Notes under the pieces: model-generated
What the model was told of the DNA's origin: nothing
Seen by the model: the letters and a program-made list of their open reading frames with translations, nothing else
Database searches by the model: none
Sequence record: NC_031927.1
Direction: 5' to 3' (one strand)
DNA length: 64,000 bases
In this document: piece by piece, positions 1 to 60,378 of the stretch
Position numbering within the stretch: the first letter of the stretch is position 1
How the letters are laid out: every line of letters begins with the position of its first letter
Program-made: the position numbers and the translations under genes

Positions 1-2
1 CT

Positions 3-383
3 AGAGTCAATGCCTTTGGATACGACAATCTTCCCGATGGTTATCACACATACTACCGCCACGGCAAGAAGCTGGCTAAGGCAGCAGCAGCCGCTAAGGT
101 AGCCGAAGCTAAAGCAGCTGCCCGTTCTATTCAGTGGACTGCCGAAGAATATGACGCGGTTGCTCTTGGCTACATCACATACGGCAAGAATGGATATAAG
201 CAAGCAATCAAGGATTTTAGGTTAGTTAGCCAGCGTCACACAGACAACGCCATTAAGCTGGCAACCTACAGCTGTGCTCACCTTGATACCAAGTCAGACG
301 TAGATGGATTAGCCGATTATGCCGAAGGTCTCCTAGACGCACTCAACGCAATTGAGCCTAAGCGATTCAAGGGCACCCGCTGA
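3..383 (+). CDS. Hypothetical early protein, 5'-truncated by the window edge
   Basis: My translation of frame 3 is open from base 3 to TGA 381-383 (RVNAFGYDNLPDG...DALNAIEPKRFKGTR). It is missing from the ORF track because its start lies outside the window. Confidence 0.8.
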   Translation, partial: RVNAFGYDNLPDGYHTYYRHGKKLAKAAAAAKVAEAKAAARSIQWTAEEYDAVALGYITYGKNGYKQAIKDFRLVSQRHTDNAIKLATYSCAHLDTKSDVDGLADYAEGLLDALNAIEPKRFKGTR

Positions 384-392
384 TTTCCCCTA

Positions 393-442
393 GGGGCTAG
401 CCACCTAGCCCCGATCTATGCTACAATTCATTCATACCAAAC
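393..442 (+). promoter_or_regulatory. Early promoter cassette 1: inverted repeat plus TACAAT -10 box
   Basis: GGGGCTAG-CCAC-CTAGCCCC (393-412), TACAAT (422-427). The 22 nt CTACAATTCATTCATACCAAAC are identical to cassettes 2 and 3. Confidence 0.7.
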
Positions 443-454
443 CAGGAACCATCA

Positions 455-673
455 ATGCCTTTCTCACCTGCCTGCCGCCTTTCAGACCAGACCCGCGTAT
501 GGGTTGAGCGCTCAATCTATGAAGGGTGCGATTGGCAAATCGAAAAGCACTTTGGACCAGCACAAGGGCAAGACGCCCAGACCATTGCCGCTCGCTTCGC
601 TGCTACGTATGGGGATGAGGGCAAGACGATGAGCCTAGCTAACCCCTGCAGCGGAATCAGAGCCGAAGATTGA
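455..673 (+). CDS. Hypothetical early protein, 72 aa
   Basis: ORF track. It sits exactly between two promoter cassettes and its stop codon is the first triplet of cassette 2. Confidence 0.7.
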   Translation: MPFSPACRLSDQTRVWVERSIYEGCDWQIEKHFGPAQGQDAQTIAARFAATYGDEGKTMSLANPCSGIRAED

Positions 674-735
674 TCAGCCAAGGGGGTTGACGGATCAGCC
701 CTCTATGGTCTACAATTCATTCATACCAAACAAGG
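671..735 (+). promoter_or_regulatory. Early sigma70-like promoter cassette 2
   Basis: TTGACG (687-692), 18-nt spacer, TACAAT (711-716). 63/65 identical to 946-1010. Confidence 0.85.
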
Positions 736-741
736 GAACCG

Positions 742-948
742 ATGACGACTCTTCACTCTATCGAAAATCTCACAGCCGAGCTCGACCGCCTAGAGGGAAT
801 CAAGAATCGCCTAGCAGGGCTGATCGTAGACCTTAAGCTCACCAACCCAGACTCACTATTCATCGGACTCTATCAGGACCGCCTCAAGTTCAATGTTCTC
901 CCAGCCATCAAGATCACCAAGGGCTACATTCTCAAGACCAGCAACTGA
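742..948 (+). CDS. Hypothetical early protein, 68 aa
   Basis: ORF track. Bounded by cassettes 2 and 3, with AAGGGA just upstream of the ATG. Confidence 0.7.
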   Translation: MTTLHSIENLTAELDRLEGIKNRLAGLIVDLKLTNPDSLFIGLYQDRLKFNVLPAIKITKGYILKTSN

Positions 949-1010
949 CCAGCCAAGGGGGTTGACGGATCAGCCCCCTATGGTCTACAATTCATTCATA
1001 CCAAACAAGG
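946..1010 (+). promoter_or_regulatory. Early sigma70-like promoter cassette 3
   Basis: TTGACG (962-967), 18-nt spacer, TACAAT (986-991). Near-identical to 671-735. Confidence 0.85.
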
Positions 1011-1018
1011 CAACCCAA

Positions 1019-1111
1019 ATGGACCCCATCTCATTCGCAATCGGTATGGTCGGCGCAGCTCTGGTCGGTATCGTCAACGCCGAGCTGATCAAAGCAAACA
1101 ATAAAGATTGA
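1019..1111 (+). CDS. Small hydrophobic protein, 30 aa (MDPISFAIGMVGAALVGIVNAELIKANNKD)
   Basis: Internal ATG of track ORF 893..1111, located just downstream of cassette 3. The longer track start would read through the promoter. One TM-like segment. Confidence 0.6.
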   Translation: MDPISFAIGMVGAALVGIVNAELIKANNKD

Positions 1112-1151
1112 TCAGCCCAGCTCATCCCACTCAATCAAAACTTTTTTTCAA

Positions 1152-1373
1152 ATGACTCCTTCCATCTTTATCGACACTGAGAACAGCTCAACAGCCGTTG
1201 ATGCCATCGTGCTCACCCCCCGTAGAGTTCAGTTCGCTTGGGCATCTGGTTCCGTCTCCGCTCACACCGTCCGCCTCCGCGATCAAGTGAGATTCTACGT
1301 TCGCCACTTGATGATGGATGAGGCTTTGAGCTACGGGCAATGGGCAAACTTCGTTCTAGATGAGCAGCTCTGA
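1152..1373 (+). CDS. Hypothetical early protein, 73 aa
   Basis: ORF track. Fits the tandem + strand arrangement. Confidence 0.7.
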   Translation: MTPSIFIDTENSSTAVDAIVLTPRRVQFAWASGSVSAHTVRLRDQVRFYVRHLMMDEALSYGQWANFVLDEQL

Positions 1374-1429
1374 CCCCTAGGCATCCTGCCCCATCCGTGC
1401 TACAATTCACTCAAGTCAATCAACCGACA

Positions 1430-1618
1430 ATGCTCAACATCACAGCCGACCAGAATGGAACCATCTCTTGGCAAGAGGCTCTCCGCTTCGTGAATGAGGC
1501 AGCAGCTGATCAGCGCAACTTCCTCATCCGTGATTTCTTACAGTCTGCTTACGCTGGATTGAGAGGAGAGAGAATCGACCTAGGTGAGCTCAACGTCTGG
1601 ATCACAGAGAACAGCTGA
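1430..1618 (+). CDS. Hypothetical early protein, 62 aa (MLNITADQNG...)
   Basis: Track ORF 1397..1618 re-started at ATG 1430, because TACAAT at 1401-1406 (followed by TCACTCA, resembling the cassette motif) marks a promoter. Confidence 0.65.
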   Translation: MLNITADQNGTISWQEALRFVNEAAADQRNFLIRDFLQSAYAGLRGERIDLGELNVWITENS

Positions 1619-1626
1619 ATCACACA

Positions 1627-1650
1627 GCCTCCCGCAAGGGGGGCTTTTTT
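1627..1650 (+). terminator. Intrinsic terminator closing the early cluster
   Basis: GCCTCCC-GCAA-GGGGGGC followed by T6. Confidence 0.9.
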
Positions 1651-2055
1651 AATGCGTGCGTGTCAACAGTGATCGTTCGTGATAGGACAGTGCTATCCAT
1701 TCGTGCGTTGAGGACAGTGATATGGCGTTGCGATCCATCGATGGTGGGCGGCGTTACCCCGTATATAAAAAGTACCTTCTATCTAAGCTATAAAAGTAAA
1801 GATCGACCTATACTTATCGCTATTTAAAAAATTCTCCCAGATATTCTATGGACCCCAGAGTTGGCTCAGAGTTGCCTCAGAATACTCAGTGCCCCCCAGA
1901 GTTGTCTCTATATTATACCACACTTCTTAAATATTCCCCCATAAAAAAATCCCCCAGGTATTCAATACCCCTAGGAGATGATTATTATTATCTTGATAAC
2001 ATTCGCTTATCTCTGTGTAATCCCTCTACACAGAAGTATTGCGTATATCTTCAAT

Positions 2056-2120
2056 AAGTACTTAGAGTGTCTTATCAACCTCAACAAGGCTATTCTACAA
2101 GTATCTCCGTGTATTGTCAA
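2056..2120 (-). promoter_or_regulatory. Minus-strand sigma70 promoter plus conserved 36-bp downstream block, copy A
   Basis: Minus strand reads TTGACA (2120-2115), 17 nt, TAGAAT (2097-2092). 2056-2091 matches 49821-49856 at 34/36. Confidence 0.75.
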
Positions 2121-2446
2121 GCCCCCATCAAGAGTATCCCTTTAAGTATCTCAACCATCCCCTGACAAACTGCACAAGGCTATTTAGAGAGTCATAAAAG
2201 AAGTATTTTCATTGAGATGCCGTAGGCACACACCGTAGGTGTGTTAGTAGAGATACTTAAAGAACCATAGAGAATCTTAGAGAAACATAGAGGACCGCAG
2301 AGAGCGCGAAAAATCCCCCTCTCAAGTTATCTCCGAAGAGAGTATTACAGAGAGGGTTATACTATTACTAAGGAATACCCATATACTCTACAACTCACTC
2401 CGAAGGGTATAGAAGAGCTTAGTGGTCAGGGGGGAAATATGCTGTG

Positions 2447-2454
2447 TATAAATA
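2447..2454 (+). promoter_or_regulatory. T4-type late promoter TATAAATA with no ORF downstream
   Basis: Exact gp55 consensus. Confidence 0.7.
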
Positions 2455-2609
2455 GAAGTGGAATACAAGCCTAGGAGCGTCTCTAATAGGCTCTCATCCT
2501 ACGGGGGATAGAGACACTCCGAGTTCCATTGAGGCTCCCCACAAAGGCATTTAGAGTACGTAGAAGAACATATAGTAACGTAGAGGTCCATAGAGGTCCT
2601 CTTTTTTTA
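2455..2609 (+). ncRNA. Candidate structured late ncRNA
   Basis: Lies between a late promoter and a hairpin-T7 terminator. Contains nested stems and a 6-bp pseudoknot (see findings). No ORF with an RBS. Confidence 0.5.
2582..2608 (+). terminator. Probable intrinsic terminator
   Basis: AGAGG-T-CC-ATAGA-GG-T-CCTCT followed by a T tract. Confidence 0.6.
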
Positions 2610-2691
2610 TGGGCGAACCCTTTTTATGACCCTAGGGGGCAAGCCCCCACAATGAGGACCCATAAATACCAATAGAGAATATTAACTTATT

Positions 2692-3405
2692 ATGGCAGTT
2701 AACATAAGCGGTAATGGAGCTATTGAGGGTATTACTTCTTTTAATGGGGAGGATATTGCTTCTTTTAATGAGGGAGGTCCTACTTTCCGCAATATACTCT
2801 TTAATGGTTGGGTGAACACCAGTATTGGAATAAACCAACGTGGCAAAACAATAGCTCAAGTTTCTAATGGGGAATATTGGGCTGATAGGTGGCAACGTGT
2901 TTCATCCACAACTATGACCCAGAAGGTTGAAGGGGGTAACTATATACCAAATAGGACATATACGTTATCTGGTAATAATGTAACAACAACACAAATCACA
3001 TCCCCTGCTAGTGGAACTTGGGATTGGGGTACTGTGCCCTCCAATGCGTCATTGGTTCAGTTGGAGCTAGGTGATACTGCATCTTCTTTTGAATATAGAC
3101 CCTATGGGTTGGAAGTAATTTTGTGTCAGAGGTATTATGAAGTTGTTGATTGTGAATATGGTACAACCGCAGTACTTGATGCGGGGAATTCGAATAAAGC
3201 TATAAAAAAACCTTGGATATATAAAGTTAGTAAAAGAATTATACCAACCGCTATTGTAACTGCTCAAAGTGGTGCTTATTCTACCAATGCTAGTGTGAGT
3301 GGAATACGAAGTTCTTTTTGCAATCTCAATTGGCAATGGCAACAGACATCTGGAAATTTTGATAGGACCAAGGCTGCTGTAGTTAACGTCGATGCCGAAC
3401 TATAA
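2692..3405 (+). CDS. Putative virion/tail-fibre-associated protein, paralogue 1
   Basis: ADRW, VQLELG..ASSFEYRP and LCQRYY motifs, as seen in phage tail-associated proteins. Has its own late promoter CATAAATA at 2661. Confidence 0.8.
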   Translation: MAVNISGNGAIEGITSFNGEDIASFNEGGPTFRNILFNGWVNTSIGINQRGKTIAQVSNGEYWADRWQRVSSTTMTQKVEGGNYIPNRTYTLSGNNVTTTQITSPASGTWDWGTVPSNASLVQLELGDTASSFEYRPYGLEVILCQRYYEVVDCEYGTTAVLDAGNSNKAIKKPWIYKVSKRIIPTAIVTAQSGAYSTNASVSGIRSSFCNLNWQWQQTSGNFDRTKAAVVNVDAEL

Positions 3406-3436
3406 TATAAATACTAATAGAAAATATTAACTTATT

Positions 3437-4159
3437 ATGGCAGTTAACATAAGCGGTAATGGAGCTATTGAGGGTATTACTTCTTTTAATGGGGGCGGAC
3501 TTACCTTTCGTAATATACTCTATAATGGGTGGGTAAACACCAGTAATGAAATAAACCAACGTGGCAAAACAATATCCGAGGTTTCTGATGGAGACTATTG
3601 GGCTGATAGGTGGCAACGTGTTTCCTCTACGACAATGACCCAAAAAGTTGAAGAGGGTAACTATATACCAAATAGGACATATACGTTATCTGGTAATAAT
3701 GTAACAACAGTGCAGGTAACATCACCTGCCAGTGGAACTTGGAATTGGGGAACTGTTCCCTCCAATGCTTCATTGGTTCAGTTAGAGTTGGGTGATACTC
3801 CATCTGCTTTTGAATATAGACCCAAGGGGTTAGAGTTGGGTTTGTGTCAGAGGTACTATCAAAATCTCAATGTTAGAATGTTGTTAGATCAGGTGAATTA
3901 TTTATTTTCTTCTCGCAATTCTTATGTTAATCCAATGCGAACTGCACCATCAGTAGGTTTTACAGGTAAGTTAAAGTGGGATGATTTAATTACCGGGCAG
4001 TTAAGTTCTTCTGGATTTGATTCGGATAATGTTAATGTTTCATCTAAGGTGATTCGGGCAACACAATTTTACGTTTATGTTGCGTTGTCGGGGGTTCAGC
4101 CGAATGTCTTTAAAAGGTATCAATTTGAAGAGGCTATTAGCCTTGATGCCGAACTATAA
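3437..4159 (+). CDS. Putative virion/tail-fibre-associated protein, paralogue 2
   Basis: Same N-terminal domain as paralogue 1, different C-terminus, ends DAEL. TATAAATA at 3406. Confidence 0.8.
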   Translation: MAVNISGNGAIEGITSFNGGGLTFRNILYNGWVNTSNEINQRGKTISEVSDGDYWADRWQRVSSTTMTQKVEEGNYIPNRTYTLSGNNVTTVQVTSPASGTWNWGTVPSNASLVQLELGDTPSAFEYRPKGLELGLCQRYYQNLNVRMLLDQVNYLFSSRNSYVNPMRTAPSVGFTGKLKWDDLITGQLSSSGFDSDNVNVSSKVIRATQFYVYVALSGVQPNVFKRYQFEEAISLDAEL

Positions 4160-4190
4160 TATAAATACCAATAGAGAATACTAACTTATT

Positions 4191-4865
4191 ATGTCAGTTA
4201 ACATAAGCGGTAATGGAGCTATTGAGGGTATTACTTCCTTTAATGGAGGAGGGCTTACTTTCCGCAATATTCTTTATAATGGTTGGGTGAACACCAGTAG
4301 TGAAATCAACCAACGTGGCAAAACAATAGCTCAAGTTTCTAATGGAAACTATTTTGCAGATCGATGGGAAAGAGTTTCATCCACAACTATGACCCAAAAA
4401 GTTGAAGAAAAAAATTATATACCAAATAGGACATATACGATATCGGGTACTAACGTAACAACAGTGCAGGTAACATCACCTGCTAGTGGGACTTGGGATT
4501 GGGGAACTGTGCCGTCTGATGCTTCATTGGTTCAGTTAGAGTTGGGTGATACTGCATCTTCTTTTGAATATAGACCCTATGGATTGGAGTTGAGTTTGTG
4601 TCAGAGGTACTATCAGTTTGCATATGCTAATATTAGAGGTAGGGGTGGGGGTATTTCTGAAAATGCAGTAACCTGGAATACTCAAATGAGAATAGCTCCA
4701 ACAATATTGCGCATTGCGGCAGCTTCAGGTGGAGGTCTCAATAATATAATTCGATATCTTGATATAGCTCCCTATGGGTGTCGTATGGAAGCAACAAACA
4801 CCCAACCTGGCGGTACGGAGAGTTATGCACTTGCGCAAATCTTGGAACTAAATGCTGAACTATGA
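4191..4865 (+). CDS. Putative virion/tail-fibre-associated protein, paralogue 3
   Basis: Same N-terminal domain, different C-terminus, ends NAEL. TATAAATA at 4160. Confidence 0.8.
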   Translation: MSVNISGNGAIEGITSFNGGGLTFRNILYNGWVNTSSEINQRGKTIAQVSNGNYFADRWERVSSTTMTQKVEEKNYIPNRTYTISGTNVTTVQVTSPASGTWDWGTVPSDASLVQLELGDTASSFEYRPYGLELSLCQRYYQFAYANIRGRGGGISENAVTWNTQMRIAPTILRIAAASGGGLNNIIRYLDIAPYGCRMEATNTQPGGTESYALAQILELNAEL

Positions 4866-4951
4866 TTGGATTTATTGTAATACTATTATTCTTTCTTGGG
4901 ATTATGGGTCTTATGACCTTCCTTTCCGTTTTTGGTGATTGGTTTGTATAG
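4862..4951 (+). CDS. Putative 29-aa membrane micropeptide (MIGFIVILLFFLGIMGLMTFLSVFGDWFV)
   Basis: My translation. ATGA overlap with the stop of paralogue 3. Almost entirely hydrophobic. Confidence 0.45.
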   Translation: MIGFIVILLFFLGIMGLMTFLSVFGDWFV

Positions 4952-5030
4952 TACAGTATATGAAGTGGTACATATTAATAGATGCCCCCAGACCCATGGA
5001 GTATAATAACAAGGTATTCAGGAGGTTGAA

Positions 5031-5192
5031 ATGACTCAACTTTATGATATAATCATTGAAGGACAGACAATTCACAAAGGTGTTTCGGAAGAAACCTTCT
5101 TTGATGTTATGTCTGACCTCTCAACAGCATATTATGAGAGGGGCTATCCAGATCCCTCAACAGTTTCCCACACAACTTACATTAAGGAGTAA
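5031..5192 (+). CDS. Hypothetical protein, 53 aa (MTQLYDIIIEGQTIHKGVSEETFFDVM...)
   Basis: My translation. AGGAGG RBS at 5020-5025 and TATAAT at 5002-5007 upstream. Confidence 0.8.
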   Translation: MTQLYDIIIEGQTIHKGVSEETFFDVMSDLSTAYYERGYPDPSTVSHTTYIKE

Positions 5193-5194
5193 CA

Positions 5195-5329
5195 ATGTTC
5201 GGCAAGACACAGGAAAAAATCGAAAAGGCTGGAAAAAAGACCCGTCAGGGTCGTTCCAACCGCACGAAACTCTCTGCAACTTCCGCGAGACCTAGGCAAA
5301 AGCGTTATCGTGGTCAAGGAAGGAGCTGA
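5195..5329 (+). CDS. Small basic protein, 44 aa (MFGKTQEKIEKAGKKTRQGRSNRTKLSATSARPRQKRYRGQGRS)
   Basis: My translation. AAGGAG RBS at 5184-5189. Resembles a small Arg/Lys-rich ORF I recall upstream of g25 in cyanomyoviruses. Confidence 0.8.
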   Translation: MFGKTQEKIEKAGKKTRQGRSNRTKLSATSARPRQKRYRGQGRS

Positions 5330-5394
5330 AATCCCCTTTTTAGTGCTCGAAAAACAAAACTAACCCTTTTTAGGGACCCTACCCCTTCGGGGTA

Positions 5395-5460
5395 TATAAA
5401 TATTTAAAGTTACGATGGGGATAGAACCCCCTTAAAAGTTCTAAAATGTAGTTTTTAGGA
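5395..5460 (+). promoter_or_regulatory. Late promoter followed by a leader with an H-type pseudoknot and an alternative RBS hairpin
   Basis: TATAAATA 5395-5402. S1 is GGGG 5417-20 with CCCC 5428-31. S2 is TAGAAC 5422-27 with GTTCTA 5438-43. Confidence 0.65.
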
Positions 5461-5468
5461 CAAATTTA

Positions 5469-5585
5469 ATGGGAAGACCCGTAGATCGCTCACCTGGCGT
5501 CGTTTTAGTCACCGATTATGGTGCTCTTGACCGCGCTCTCGCTCAAAAAGCTCGCCAAGAAGCCGAAAAAGCCAAGAAAAATTAA
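5469..5585 (+). CDS. Small hypothetical protein, 38 aa (MGRPVDRSPGVVLVTDYGALDRALAQKARQEAEKAKKN)
   Basis: My translation. AGGA at 5457-5460 upstream, and a terminator follows. Confidence 0.7.
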   Translation: MGRPVDRSPGVVLVTDYGALDRALAQKARQEAEKAKKN

Positions 5586-5594
5586 ATAATCTTT

Positions 5595-5621
5595 AAAAAA
5601 GCTCCTTCGGGGGCTTTTTTT
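5595..5621 (+). terminator. Intrinsic terminator, possibly bidirectional
   Basis: A6-GCTCC-TTCG-GGGGC-T7, with a cUUCGg tetraloop. Confidence 0.9.
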
Positions 5622-5626
5622 ATGCC

Positions 5627-5634
5627 TATAAATA
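5627..5634 (+). promoter_or_regulatory. Late promoter for g25
   Basis: TATAAATA. Confidence 0.85.
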
Positions 5635-6060
5635 ATGATAAATGTTGCTTATGCGATGGCTGACGTAAATCGTATCTCTAGATCATTCAAAGACATCAGT
5701 TTATCGTTCCAGCCACATCCTGTAACGAAGGATATTGGTGTTTTGGTCAATGAAAGGGCAATTAATCGGTCAGTTCGCAATATTGTTCAAACAATTCCTG
5801 GCGAAAAGTTTTTCAATCCACTATTTGGGTCCAATGTTAGGTCTCAATTATTTGAAAACGCCAACTATGCCGTTGCTCTTGCGATTGAACAGGAAATTCT
5901 TACATCATTAAGGAATTTTGAGCCTAGAATTGCTAATGTTGGAGTAACAGCTAATTTATTCCCAGACAGGAATGAGTTTGACGTTACAGTTACATATGAA
6001 ATTGTAGGACAAGCGTTTCCACCCCAAACTTATAACTTTATTTTAACGAGTACTAGGTAA
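5635..6060 (+). CDS. g25: Baseplate wedge subunit gp25
   Basis: FKDISLSF...ERAINRSVRNIVQT..GEKFFNPLFGS...FEPRI pattern, directly upstream of g6. The true start is probably ATG 5656, since 5635 abuts the promoter. Confidence 0.92.
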   Translation: MINVAYAMADVNRISRSFKDISLSFQPHPVTKDIGVLVNERAINRSVRNIVQTIPGEKFFNPLFGSNVRSQLFENANYAVALAIEQEILTSLRNFEPRIANVGVTANLFPDRNEFDVTVTYEIVGQAFPPQTYNFILTSTR

Positions 6061-41134: not shown

Positions 41135-41156
41135 TTCCAACACAAAAAACACACAG

Positions 41157-41182
41157 AGGATCCCGAAAGGGGTCCTTTTTTT
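41157..41182 (+). terminator. Intrinsic terminator after g19
   Basis: AGGATCCC-GAAA-GGGGTCCT followed by a T tract. Confidence 0.9.
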
Positions 41183-41230
41183 ATGCGCTAAATATAAATG
41201 TAAGACGGTATACACCCACTTTTTATTATT

Positions 41231-46561: not shown

Positions 46562-46595
46562 TTTAAACTCCGACGAGTTAATCTTCACAGTAATA

Positions 46596-46625
46596 AAGGG
46601 GGCTCCGAAAGGGGCTCCTTTTTTA
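46596..46625 (+). terminator. Intrinsic terminator after g23
   Basis: GGGGGCTCC-GAAA-GGGGCTCCT followed by a T tract. Confidence 0.85.
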
Positions 46626-46662
46626 TGCCTCTAAATAGTACACGGTCTATTATATTATTAGA

Positions 46663-49376: not shown

Positions 49377-49802
49377 ATGACTGATAAGAAGATAGCATCT
49401 ATTAAACTAGTATCGGGTGAAGAAGTTGTATGTACATTACTGAGTATTGAAAAGGATGGTTCTTATACAATCTTATCTTTTACCAATCCATTAAGAATAC
49501 AATTACGGGATAGAAGGAGGAACAAAAGGTATTCATTAGAGCCTTGGTTGTGTCTTAAAAATGATACGATTCATTGTATTGATGTTACTAAAATTATTAC
49601 AGTAAATGAAATTACTGATGAGGATGTTCTTAGTGACTATAACTCATACTACAGGAAAAAGATTAACTTAATGCCTAAACCTAAAAGGGAGATATCAACT
49701 TCTAATAAAATAGGTTATGTAGGTAATACAAAAGACTTTAAAGATGTTCTAGAAAAACTCTATAGAGATACTGATTCATATGAGAAGCCAACTGACGTAT
49801 AA
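49377..49802 (+). CDS. Hypothetical protein downstream of uvsW (Sm-like-type N-terminus)
   Basis: IKLVSGEEVV motif at the position usually found between uvsW and g55. Confidence 0.75.
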   Translation: MTDKKIASIKLVSGEEVVCTLLSIEKDGSYTILSFTNPLRIQLRDRRRNKRYSLEPWLCLKNDTIHCIDVTKIITVNEITDEDVLSDYNSYYRKKINLMPKPKREISTSNKIGYVGNTKDFKDVLEKLYRDTDSYEKPTDV

Positions 49803-49820
49803 GTATCTCTATGTTTCTCT

Positions 49821-49886
49821 AAGTACTTAAAGTGTCTTATCAACCTCGACAAGGCTGATTGTACTCCATTTTGAGACCCTTGTCAA
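49821..49886 (-). promoter_or_regulatory. Minus-strand sigma70 promoter plus conserved 36-bp block, copy B
   Basis: Minus strand reads TTGACA (49886-49881), 17 nt, TACAAT (49863-49858). Block is 34/36 identical to 2056-2091. Confidence 0.75.
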
Positions 49887-53489: not shown

Positions 53490-54119
53490 ATGAGTAAATT
53501 TAAGAACAACCTTATAGATGCTAATTTATTTCCTAGTTTTCTTTTATCTACTGATCTAAGATCTCTTGTTAGTAATAATGATATAAACTCAGAGTTTACT
53601 ATTATTAGAAATATTGATAGTGGGTTGAATAAAACAAACGTTGGTGGGTGGCACTCCACTCTTTATAAGAAGAATAGTGATTTGTGTGATTACACTAACA
53701 TAAAAAAACTATATGAACTTGTTTCTGAGTTTGTTGATGAATTTTTAGAAAATGATAAAACTAATTTATATACATCGAGTGTTAACTCATGGTTGTTGGA
53801 AAATGATTGTGGGTCATATAATACACTACATAATCATGGTAAAACTGATCTAATTGGGGTATATTATGTTAATATTCCTGAGGACTGTGGTGGATTAACT
53901 CTAATAAGAACCGACGCATTTACTCATACTGCGCTATGTGGTTCAAATAATTCTACACAATTTGCAAATTCCTTTACCCCAGATATTGATATCGGTAGAT
54001 TGTATGTTATGCCTGGTCATCTTTATCATCATGTAAGACCATTTGATAGTGAAGGATTGAGGAGATCTATTGTATTCAATATTAATTGTCAAGATATAAG
54101 TTATAGACAATCTGAATAG
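53490..54119 (+). CDS. 2OG-Fe(II) oxygenase superfamily protein (TIGR02466-like)
   Basis: W...N..G.YN..H.HG...L.GVYYV..P, L.H.V.P and R.SI.FN motifs. Confidence 0.8.
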   Translation: MSKFKNNLIDANLFPSFLLSTDLRSLVSNNDINSEFTIIRNIDSGLNKTNVGGWHSTLYKKNSDLCDYTNIKKLYELVSEFVDEFLENDKTNLYTSSVNSWLLENDCGSYNTLHNHGKTDLIGVYYVNIPEDCGGLTLIRTDAFTHTALCGSNNSTQFANSFTPDIDIGRLYVMPGHLYHHVRPFDSEGLRRSIVFNINCQDISYRQSE

Positions 54120-54163
54120 TGTCCACTGCCCCGCCAAGGGGCTTTTTAATGCTCTATAATAAT
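54118..54163 (+). promoter_or_regulatory. Repeated hairpin/T-tract plus TATAAT promoter cassette, copy 1
   Basis: 41/46 identical to 57353-57398. GCCCC-N5-GGGGC-T5, then TATAAT at 54155. Confidence 0.8.
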
Positions 54164-54183
54164 TTCATTGAAACGGATACGCT

Positions 54184-57352: not shown

Positions 57353-57398
57353 AGTGACCACTGCCCCACTATGGGGCTTTTTTATGCTCTATAATAAT
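57353..57398 (+). promoter_or_regulatory. Repeated hairpin/T-tract plus TATAAT promoter cassette, copy 2
   Basis: 41/46 identical to 54118-54163. TATAAT at 57390. Confidence 0.8.
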
Positions 57399-57419
57399 CA
57401 CATACAACACAAGCCAACT

Positions 57420-59757: not shown

Positions 59758-59764
59758 TACACAG

Positions 59765-59790
59765 AGCCTCCCGTAAGGGAGGCTTTTTTT
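59765..59790 (+). terminator. Intrinsic terminator after g45
   Basis: AGCCTCCC-GTAA-GGGAGGCT followed by a T tract. Confidence 0.92.
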
Positions 59791-59819
59791 ATGCTATATA
59801 TTATAGATTAGATTATATT

Positions 59820-60224: not shown

Positions 60225-60346
60225 TATCCATAGCGAACCGAGCGCTTTATATTCGGCTTTCCTTGTAAATTCCAAGGACACGGTTACGGAATCTGGGGAA
60301 CGGAAAGCCCTAGATGCTATACTGCCCCCGTAAGGGGGTTTTTTTT
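60225..60346 (+). ncRNA. Candidate structured RNA ending in an intrinsic terminator
   Basis: GGCTTTCC/GGAAAGCC 8-bp stem, nested ATTCC/GGAAT stem, AACCG/CGGTT pseudoknot, then GCCCCC-GTAA-GGGGGT-T8. Confidence 0.4.
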
Positions 60347-60378
60347 GTGCCTAAATAAATCAAAATACTTTTTATATT

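Follow-up and report, generated by a model that had tools for sequence, protein, structure and literature searches.

A conserved sigma70-type promoter cassette on the non-coding strand of Synechococcus phage S-CAM7 and its candidate small RNA

What does a near-consensus host-type promoter do on a strand that carries no annotated genes? The question arises at positions 1943-2120 of a 64,000-nucleotide (nt) stretch of sequence record NC_031927.1, hereafter the window (window position = record position - 62,000). Between 1600 and 2700 the sequence matches Synechococcus phage S-CAM7 at 100% identity (NC_031927.1/KU686212.1; Kyanoviridae, a T4-like cyanomyovirus). A minus-strand promoter is followed here by a segment that could be transcribed into a structured RNA and by a terminator-like hairpin. 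This locus, called copy A, is one of four copies (A to D) of a promoter cassette in the S-CAM7 genome. Comparison of the copies, of S-CAM7 isolates and of related phages indicates that copy A is probably a functional promoter-to-terminator unit on the non-coding strand. We consider the chances about even that the unit makes an early 143-nt non-coding RNA with a role at the RNA level. The coordinates are collected in Table 1.

Promoter, predicted RNA and terminator of copy A

The first-pass annotation of the window had reported a minus-strand TTGACA-N17-TAGAAT on a strand without convincing genes. The promoter was found exactly as described (2120-2115 / 2097-2092), the coding sequences annotated in the S-CAM7 stretches inspected are all on the plus strand, and the copy A RNA has no conserved open reading frame (ORF). 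The promoter matches the consensus at 11 of 12 positions and is the top promoter-like site in the first 6 kb. That interval contains 11 promoter-like sites compared with 13.9 in shuffled sequences, i.e., no excess, so the consensus match alone proves nothing. Perfect TTGACA-N16-18-TAnAAT sites are rare: 8 were found in the 216-kb genome vs. 0 for a reversed-pattern control, and on the minus strand of the whole genome the only ones are copy A and its twin at 49886. As in sigma70 promoters generally, the hexamers and their spacing are retained while the spacer drifts; this was seen among the four paralogues, in 68 aligned cassettes and in isolates of six other lineages. Based on its rarity in the genome together with paralogy and orthology, we judged the copy A promoter to be a host-sigma70-type promoter, real rather than a chance match.

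Transcription by the sigma70 holoenzyme begins at a purine (+1) preceded by a pyrimidine (-1), 7-8 nt past the -10 hexamer. A TGT trinucleotide is invariant in the 68 aligned cassettes and its G lies 7-8 nt past the -10 hexamer. Since both the position of TGT and the pyrimidine/purine pattern fit the sigma70 rules, the copy A start is predicted at G2085.

An RNA running from G2085 to approximately 1943 would be 143 nt long. Its minimum free energy is -38.1 kcal/mol (z = -4.0), a value equaled by 0 of 300 dinucleotide shuffles, and the opposite strand folds at just -29.2 kcal/mol. The predicted fold consists of a mostly open 31-nt 5' segment, a 63-nt imperfect hairpin, and a 10-bp hairpin leading into U7. 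Most of the parts had been noted in the first-pass annotation. The palindrome at 2055-2064 was confirmed as TAAGTACTTA, and the 5-bp hairpin at 1995-2011 was recovered as GATAA/TTATC. The 8-bp hairpin at 2012-2034 proved to be the tip (TCTGTGTA at 2012-2019, TACACAGA at 2027-2034) of the longer 63-nt hairpin, and the hairpin placed at about 1953-1975 ahead of a minus-strand T7 corresponds to a 10-bp hairpin at 1979-1949 running into the U-run (A7 at 1943-1949). The stem of the latter contains 5 G-C, 3 A-U, and 2 G.U pairs; with its G+C hairpin and the U-run behind it, it has the form of an intrinsic terminator. It was absent from the automatic terminator scan because the 11-nt loop is over the loop limit of the scan.

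To compare conservation along the gap, three S-CAM7 isolates were aligned and the variable columns were counted per segment (Table 1). The drop in conservation among isolates coincides with the predicted 3' end of the RNA and its terminator. The two substitutions in the RNA body, at 1991 and 1967, are both unpaired, the latter being located in the terminator loop. The third isolate substitution, at 2065, is a C/T difference that also separates the paralogues. With an 86-nt cassette query, three matches were obtained in each of three other S-CAM7 records; these matches are most likely copies A, B, and C.

The coding status of the locus was also examined. RefSeq annotates gp119 (1597-1827) and gp120 (1848-2057) on the plus strand, and two sister isolates annotate neither. 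Past the terminator, the sister isolates carry indels of 19, 1, and 28 nt that break gp119 and gp120. These lengths are not multiples of three and would be intolerable to any reading frame; we therefore rejected the two ORFs as genes, and they are probably spurious gene calls. gp119 begins ahead of the plus-strand terminator at 1626-1645 and reads through it. Copy A does not qualify as a cis-antisense RNA, since the opposing ORFs gp119 and gp120 are not conserved frames. On the minus strand, a 37-aa ORF at 2007-2120 was rejected as well: it begins inside the -35 hexamer and its frame is lost in the other copies. The minus-strand frame through the shared block stops after 7 codons in copy D and continues through the terminator in copy C. 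As the frame is not kept among the copies, the copy A RNA encodes no conserved peptide.

Table 1. Features of the copy A locus and of the cassette copies in S-CAM7 (window positions unless marked as record positions)
Feature	Position	Strand	Remarks
Gene-free gap, ~1 kb	1650-2691		Holds the copy A unit; no coding sequence annotated here in two other isolates
Gap upstream of promoter	2121-2691		Variable columns 0.7%; no indels
Transcribed unit	1943-2091		Variable columns 2.0%; no indels
Segment beyond terminator	1650-1942		Variable columns 23%; 59 indel columns
-35 hexamer TTGACA	2115-2120	-	Same in 4 of 4 S-CAM7 copies and at about 75 of the 80 gp55 loci of relatives
-10 hexamer TAGAAT, 17-nt spacer	2092-2097	-	TACAAT, TAGAAT or TATAAT in paralogues and orthologues, with equal spacing
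Predicted transcription start	2085	-	G of invariant TGT, 7 nt after the -10 hexamer; from start-site rules
37-nt shared block	2055-2091	-	Discriminator and first 31 nt of the predicted RNA; contains palindrome TAAGTACTTA
Inverted repeat AGCCT-TGTTG-AGGTT	2077-2091	-	5' arm is the discriminator; 3' arm at +5 to +9
Palindrome TAAGTACTTA	2055-2064	-	Inside the 37-nt shared block
63-nt imperfect hairpin	1992-2054	-	Tip TCTGTGTA / TACACAGA; 0 substitutions inside among three isolates
Intrinsic-terminator-like element	1943-1979	-	Stem 1979-1970 / 1958-1949, 11-nt loop, U-run 1949-1943
Phased TAGAG-N5 array, 10-nt units	2248-2302	+	Upstream of the promoter; more at 2509-2533 and 2561-2595
Copy A	record 64091	-	The unit described here; in the gene-free gap
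Copy B	record 111856 (window 49815-49886)	-	Back to back with the gp55 promoter; directed into the gp152 3' end, toward uvsW
Copy D	record 155142	+	Leader before a 51-aa ORF
Copy C	record 209615	+	Short terminated unit ahead of a glutaredoxin gene

The cassette in S-CAM7 and its relatives

The cassette consists of the promoter and the 37-nt block (C)AGCCTTGT(C/T)GAGG(T/G)TGATAAG..ACT(C/T)TAAGTACT, and it occurs four times in the genome. The hexamers and their spacing are identical in the four copies; the spacer sequences differ. A 36-bp block common to copy A and 49821-49856 had been noticed before. The repeat is real and somewhat longer, covering approximately 49815-49856 (42 nt at 90% identity) with the discriminator included, and the promoter is shared too. 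This second locus is copy B. It lies between gp152 (annotated "methylamine utilization", downstream of uvsW) and gp55, the late sigma factor gene, and points away from gp55, so that its RNA would overlap the 3' end of gp152. In copy C, a strong terminator (GGGACCTCTTTAGGTCCC-T6) follows within 25 nt of the block, 60 nt after the start, giving a predicted RNA of ~66 nt; between +22 and +37 this copy also carries CTCTAAGTACTTAGAG, a perfect palindrome of 16 bp. The -35 hexamer of copy D is located in the loop of a terminator hairpin that lies upstream. By appearance, three of the four copies are small terminated RNAs that begin with the same 31 nt.

A 12-bp inverted repeat (CTATAGAGATACT ... AGTATCTCTATG) was observed across the gp152 stop codon at 49760-49815, followed by a minus-strand U5 at about +95. 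This hairpin could terminate the copy B RNA at ~100 nt.

We examined the position of copy B in relatives by using 80 IMG/VR loci that encode gp55 relatives (69-100% identity). A cassette divergent from gp55 is present in about 79 of the 80, the remaining locus being incomplete. TTGACA/T-N16-18-TAnnnT was found at this position in 76 loci, three of which first matched a spurious upstream TTGACT with the cassette lying just downstream; four more gp55 loci carry TTGCCA-N17-TATAAT instead. The cassette and the gp55 promoter stand back to back, and in most relatives their -35 hexamers overlap. The orthologous copy is also present in all the isolates checked, namely ACG-2014f, P-HM2, the freshwater phage S-CRM01, S-RIM2, and Sinorhizobium phage phiM12, as well as S-SCSM1 and S-BM3, where it appeared initially as a weak BLAST hit. 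In phiM12 (KF381361.1, 22251-22403) a TTGACA-N16-TATAAT promoter diverges from gp55, is followed by CAGGA-ATG-TCCTG, and heads an annotated 50-aa gene on the opposite strand. The occurrence of the gp55-divergent promoter in a non-cyanophage T4 relative implies that the arrangement is older than the cyanophages. From these comparisons, copy B is the ancestral, widely conserved copy.

The number of copies varies among phages: one in ACG-2014f, two in S-SCSM1, and three in S-RIM2. The S-RIM2 copies share TA(G/C)AAT-AACCATGT(R)(R)(R)GGTT, and two of the three head plus-strand protein genes. By this comparison the cassette has multiplied independently at least three times, with start-region identity specific to each lineage, and the conserved module is the promoter plus start region, not one particular RNA body.

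In P-HM2, uvsY, uvsW, and gene 128 are expressed late and g55 is a middle gene (supplement of PMC5082946). With the uvsW cluster being late, the conserved copy would aim an early-type promoter into a late unit. Cyanomyoviruses have neither motA nor asiA, their early genes carry sigma70-like promoters, and a single theta origin has been predicted for Syn9 (PMC2984593, PMC5931967). We found no description of the cassette or of a conserved gp55-divergent promoter in the literature searched; the Syn9 start-site study (Doron et al., 2016) may already map the orthologous start.

The start region contains an inverted repeat centered on the start site. Right after the -10 hexamer, relatives carry AACCT-TTGTAG-AGGTT, AACTC-TGTAG-GAGTT or ACCCT-TTGTG-AGGGT, and S-CAM7 carries AGCCT-TGTYG-AGGTT. 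When all symmetry centers were scanned, 64 of 67 distinct cassettes had at least five consecutive pairs centered 7-9.5 nt past the -10 hexamer; most other centers were occupied in 0-10% of cassettes, the exceptions being secondary peaks at 2.5 and 12-12.5 nt. For 50 distinct 20-nt start regions, the mean hairpin energy was -3.6 kcal/mol vs. -1.1 for shuffles and -2.2 for the reverse complement (Wilcoxon, 4e-13 and 1e-7, respectively). Permitting G.T pairs added 1.5 pairs on average and permitting A.C pairs added 0.3; G.T mismatches are thus tolerated and A.C mismatches are not. The arms covary (CCT/AGG, CTC/GAG, CCC/GGG), and the S-SCSM1 paralogues retain pairing despite different 3' arms (GAGGT vs. 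GGGAT). Unrelated repeat sequences occupy the equal position in P-HM2 and S-CRM01 (ACACT/AGTGT) and in phiM12 (CAGGA/TCCTG). Pair runs in copies A, B, and C are 7, 9, and 9. Of the 65 promoter-like sites in the genome, three that are unrelated have runs of 7-9 and the rest have 2-6, mostly 3-4. Taken together, the alignments indicate that the repeat is real, selected for complementarity on the non-template strand, and specific to the cassette. An RNA 5' stem-loop was considered as an explanation of the conserved repeat and rejected: the 5' arm is the discriminator and lies upstream of G2085, so an RNA from the copy A promoter would be made without it. The repeat could be an operator, it could form a hairpin in a scrunched or displaced non-template strand, or a mutational bias could mimic wobble pairs.

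Further repeats are concentrated in the gap. TAGAG-N5-TAGAG occurs five times in the genome, three times in the gap and once each directly after the block of copies B and C, compared with an expectation of ~0.5 per strand. AAGTATCTC occurs four times, three in the gap and one at copy B, and a degenerate second -10/start region is present at 2166-2184. Together with how little the gap varies, these motifs suggest a control region that acts at the DNA level. Judged from the start-site repeat and the phased repeats, part of the selection on the cassette acts on DNA.

One metatranscriptome contig of 283 nt, matching the 1940-2190 region, runs from 1940-1961 directly into 2144-2187 and from there returns to 2068. 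This order points to an S-CAM7 relative in which the gap modules are rearranged, and it fits modular shuffling.

RNA, promoter, origin or relic

The first-pass annotation had offered two roles for the unit, an early non-coding RNA or an origin primer. The former stands as the best reading, with a conserved promoter, conservation bounded by the terminator, and no ORF; for the latter the evidence is mixed. As a small RNA, copy A would work as follows. Unmodified host RNA polymerase would fire the promoter early in infection, and transcription from G2085 to about 1943 would yield the structured, non-coding RNA of 143 nt. Its first 31 nt would be common to sibling transcripts: the terminated ~66-nt RNA of copy C, the copy B RNA antisense into gp152/uvsW, and the mRNA leader of the small gene behind copy D. 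These RNAs may act via the shared 5' segment, whose exact complement is the spacer that separates the late uvsY-uvsW-gp152 unit from the gp55 promoter, downstream of the former and upstream of the latter. Because of this complementarity, the siblings would add dosage to an ancestral cis-antisense RNA directed toward the late uvsW cluster. The cassette might be read at the DNA level in addition, by polymerase or another factor, through the start-site repeat and the TAGAG repeats.

When the shared 31 nt were scanned for ungapped complementarity to the plus strand of the genome, only the cassette loci matched (score 67). The sole evident target is therefore the gp152-gp55 spacer at the 3' end of the late uvsW unit, with which the RNAs of all four copies could pair.

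Two groups of known RNAs can be compared with such a small RNA. CfrI of S-PM2, an antisense RNA of ~225 nt (Millard et al., 2010), was the first reported in a T4-like phage (PMC2984593, PMC5931967). Like CfrI, the cassette RNAs would be non-coding or antisense RNAs of a T4-like cyanophage opposite genes, copy B being cis-antisense to a gene 3' end. CfrI belongs to the psbA/homing endonuclease locus and has no sequence relation to the cassette, whereas copy A is antisense to nothing annotated; CfrI was detected experimentally, whereas the copy A RNA is predicted from sequence.

Sibling small RNAs with a shared 5' seed include Qrr1-4 and OmrA/B. Here too, a conserved 5' segment of ~30 nt, for the most part unpaired, is common to several promoter-to-terminator units that differ beyond it. 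Unlike in those families, the scan of the phage genome gave no trans target, one of the cassette copies serves as an mRNA leader, and part of the shared block is located upstream of the start, so that its conservation is not purely that of an RNA seed.

Several results weigh against a small RNA. Outside the cassette loci, no trans target was apparent in the phage genome, the top other score in the complementarity scan being 31 vs. a shuffled mean maximum of 32.5. An Rfam covariance-model search (E ≤ 1; positions 1-6000 and the loci of copies B, C, and D), as proposed in the first-pass annotation, gave no match over any of the four copies. No relatives of the copy A body were found outside the S-CAM7 lineage in the phage collection and in IMG/VR. 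Four marine metatranscriptomes contain 6-11% of the sequence words, and on 1-6000 they provide only short, unstranded contigs at a depth of 1-5; some of these derive from copy B relatives, and one derives from a relative whose gap modules are rearranged. Such low-depth, unstranded contigs, the only ones in the RNA libraries with pieces of the region, speak neither for nor against expression. A terminator follows the gp55-proximal copy in just 17 of 68 relative loci, and all of these are weak. The paralogous cassettes of S-RIM2 simply head protein-coding genes, and the conserved unit may thus be the promoter and start region with no RNA body. Finally, the inverted repeat cannot fold in an RNA begun at G2085, so that the RNA product gives no explanation for it.

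In an alternative that we regard as unlikely, the cassette is a class of promoter regulated at the DNA level, the copy A RNA is incidental, and the selected unit is the promoter with its start-site repeat and the palindrome/TAGAG sites. The reader of such promoters would be either RNA polymerase itself or a DNA-binding factor of phage or host, and the cassette would turn a small regulon on or off or boost the back-to-back gp55 promoter. The idea that a scrunched non-template-strand hairpin helps the polymerase to escape from a too-perfect promoter is a tentative one. In agreement with a promoter class, paralogues within each phage share the promoter and the first 15-37 nt whether a non-coding RNA, an antisense RNA or an mRNA follows. 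The repeat is centered on the start site in all lineages despite its changed sequence, from AACCT/AGGTT to the unrelated arms of P-HM2 and phiM12, and most of the other strong promoter-like sites of the genome do not have it. The 16-bp palindrome of copy C, the clustering of TAAGTAYYT and TAGAG motifs at cassettes, and the overlap of the cassette and gp55 -35 hexamers in most relatives point in the same direction. The well-formed terminator of copy A and the conservation boundary at the RNA 3' end would be unexpected if the RNA were incidental, and no candidate binding protein was identified. The restriction of G.T mismatches to one strand favors nucleic-acid pairing over protein half-sites, but a transcription-linked C-to-T bias could mimic it.

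Among the known elements closest to the cassette is PeSL (promoter-early stem-loop). Arbiol et al. in 2010 reportedly described PeSL as mobile regulatory cassettes of T4-type phages. Like PeSL, the cassette is a repeated early sigma70 promoter module that is dispersed in a T4-type genome and was probably spread by recombination. PeSL precede small early genes on the coding strand, whereas copies A and B point against genes. Unlike PeSL, the cassette has its own conserved start region with a start-site inverted repeat, and nearly all relatives examined keep its ancestral copy at a fixed core position between uvsW and gp55. Copy A lies on the non-coding strand, is not followed by an ORF, and is without a stem-loop upstream; the PeSL description fits copy D only. 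The S-CAM7 genome also carries PeSL-like modules of ~70 nt (TTGACG-N18-TACAAT-TCATTCATACC) before each small early ORF, at 382-451, 671-740, 946-1015, and 1389-1413 on the plus strand. These early-array modules (382-1413) are without the start-site inverted repeat of the cassette.

Transcription-primed replication provides another possible role. In T4, oriF and oriG consist of a promoter and an A+T-rich unwinding element at which an R-loop supplies the primer, oriE consists of an early promoter and iterons, and the UvsW helicase, made late, removes R-loops (PMC3016281). By analogy, the cassette transcript could hybridize or aid unwinding and so prime or license leading-strand synthesis, as part of a T4-type origin or origin-control element; we consider this unlikely. 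It is also doubtful that the TAGAG repeats bind an initiator or architectural protein, that the four copies define replicons, and that late UvsW shuts them off. In its favor, as at T4 origins, there is a host-polymerase promoter, a short non-coding transcript is suspected to be the active product, and several dispersed copies exist. The TAGAG-N5-TAGAG pairs, all five of which lie in the gap or at copies B and C, are iteron-like phased repeats that may correspond to the iterons of oriE. S-CAM7 encodes the late UvsW RNA-DNA helicase, as T4 does. The uvsW gene, late in P-HM2, adjoins the conserved copy; the latter diverges from gp55, and the synteny reaches from marine cyanophages as far as phiM12. 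The 1-kb gene-free region is nearly invariant between isolates, and the better pairing of the start-site repeat on the non-template strand would fit a displaced single strand. The four copies are also evenly spread on the 216-kb circle, with gaps of 47.8, 43.3, 54.5, and 70.6 kb; for the smallest gap, random placement gives P = (1 - 4d/L)^3 = 0.008 in a test that is post hoc with n = 4.

Other observations speak against an origin. Even spacing was not reproduced in S-RIM2 (three copies, P about 0.16) or S-SCSM1 (two copies), ACG-2014f has a single copy, and in S-RIM2 the paralogues act as ordinary mRNA promoters. The cumulative GC skew gives no origin signal, climbing monotonically without a turn at any of the copies. 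Copy A does have a promoter that could supply a primer RNA, as in oriF/oriG. Unlike oriF/oriG, it has no marked A+T-rich unwinding element: the GC fraction in 50-nt windows from 2075 to 1950 is 0.32-0.40, vs. a median of 0.40 and a 5th percentile of 0.28 for the window. The transcripts of copies A and C would be short, strongly folded, and terminated, which disfavors a persistent hybrid. T4 origins have no shared motif, whereas the S-CAM7 copies share sequence, and the cassette promoter, unlike those of T4, is plain sigma70-type, as cyanophages lack MotA (PMC2984593). The most far-reaching version, in which the cassettes are the replication origins of T4-like cyanophages, with the start-site hairpin on the displaced non-template strand, TAGAG iterons as assembly sites, and an ancestral origin between the late uvsW unit and gp55 that S-CAM7 multiplied to four evenly spaced ones, appears quite unlikely.

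It is very unlikely that copy A is a functionless relic, a duplicated cassette left by recombination in a plastic region, in the manner of mobile promoter-stem-loop cassettes of T4-type phages, and kept only by recency: the gap is a mosaic of cassette fragments (the degenerate copy at 2166-2184, and TAGAG units that match the sequence after copy B in opposite orientation), borders a hyperplastic early cassette array, and has an RNA body limited to the S-CAM7 lineage, but the unit and the upstream gap vary far less (2.0 and 0.7%) than the adjacent, indel-bearing 300 nt (23%), the promoter is still at 11 of 12 consensus positions, and each of the three other S-CAM7 records has its three cassette matches.

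Surroundings and significance of the cassette

The gap is flanked on one side by the strong plus-strand terminator at 1626-1645, which closes the early cassette array, and on the other by the first tail-fiber-like gene, from 2692. The array on the far side consists of small early genes with one TTGACG-N18-TACAAT promoter apiece. This gene, at 2692-4865, is the first of three tail-fiber-like paralogues.

Elsewhere, a module made of a terminator hairpin, a T-run, TATGC, and a (C)TATAAATA-like sequence recurs on the plus strand at 41151-41193, 46593-46635, 54118-54168, and 57353-57403. Further TATAAATA-like modules were found at 59759-59801, 60314-60364, and 5609-5634 on the same strand. They are apparently combined terminator/late-promoter junctions between late genes. 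About 8 kb before the window start, record positions 53734-53965 form a second iteron-like non-coding region. It has a perfect TTGACA-N18-TATAAT promoter whose start site carries an 11-bp near-palindrome, and ~100 nt downstream there are tandem 27-nt units (CCATAGAGTCCATAGAGCCTATTAGCT) with eight CATAGAG motifs at 9/18-nt spacing.

Two weak RNA-family matches were recorded. On the minus strand, 5589-5703 gave a sub-threshold Rfam match to the enterobacterial small RNA STnc130 (35.4 bits, gathering score 55, E = 0.012), which is probably due to chance. At record 210948-211002 (plus strand), upstream of a small ORF, the glutamine riboswitch aptamer RF01739 is matched weakly (26.3 bits, gathering score 35, E = 0.03). 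Marine cyanophages are known to carry RNAs of this class, and the match may represent a genuine divergent member.

T4-like cyanophages kill a large share of ocean Synechococcus and Prochlorococcus, and their early-to-late switch, which operates without MotA and AsiA, and their origins are poorly understood. An early-type promoter that faces backward and keeps a fixed place in the core genome, with the late uvsW unit on one side and gp55 on the other, is a strong candidate for an element of timing or of origin function. Strand-specific RNA-seq exists for P-HM2, in which the minus-strand start is predicted at ~120,709 of GU075905, and start-site mapping exists for Syn9. Under the ordinary reading, two spurious gene calls (gp119 and gp120) would be corrected and four small transcription units would be added to the S-CAM7 map. 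If it is true that the start-site repeat acts on the polymerase, the cassette would represent an undescribed kind of promoter element.

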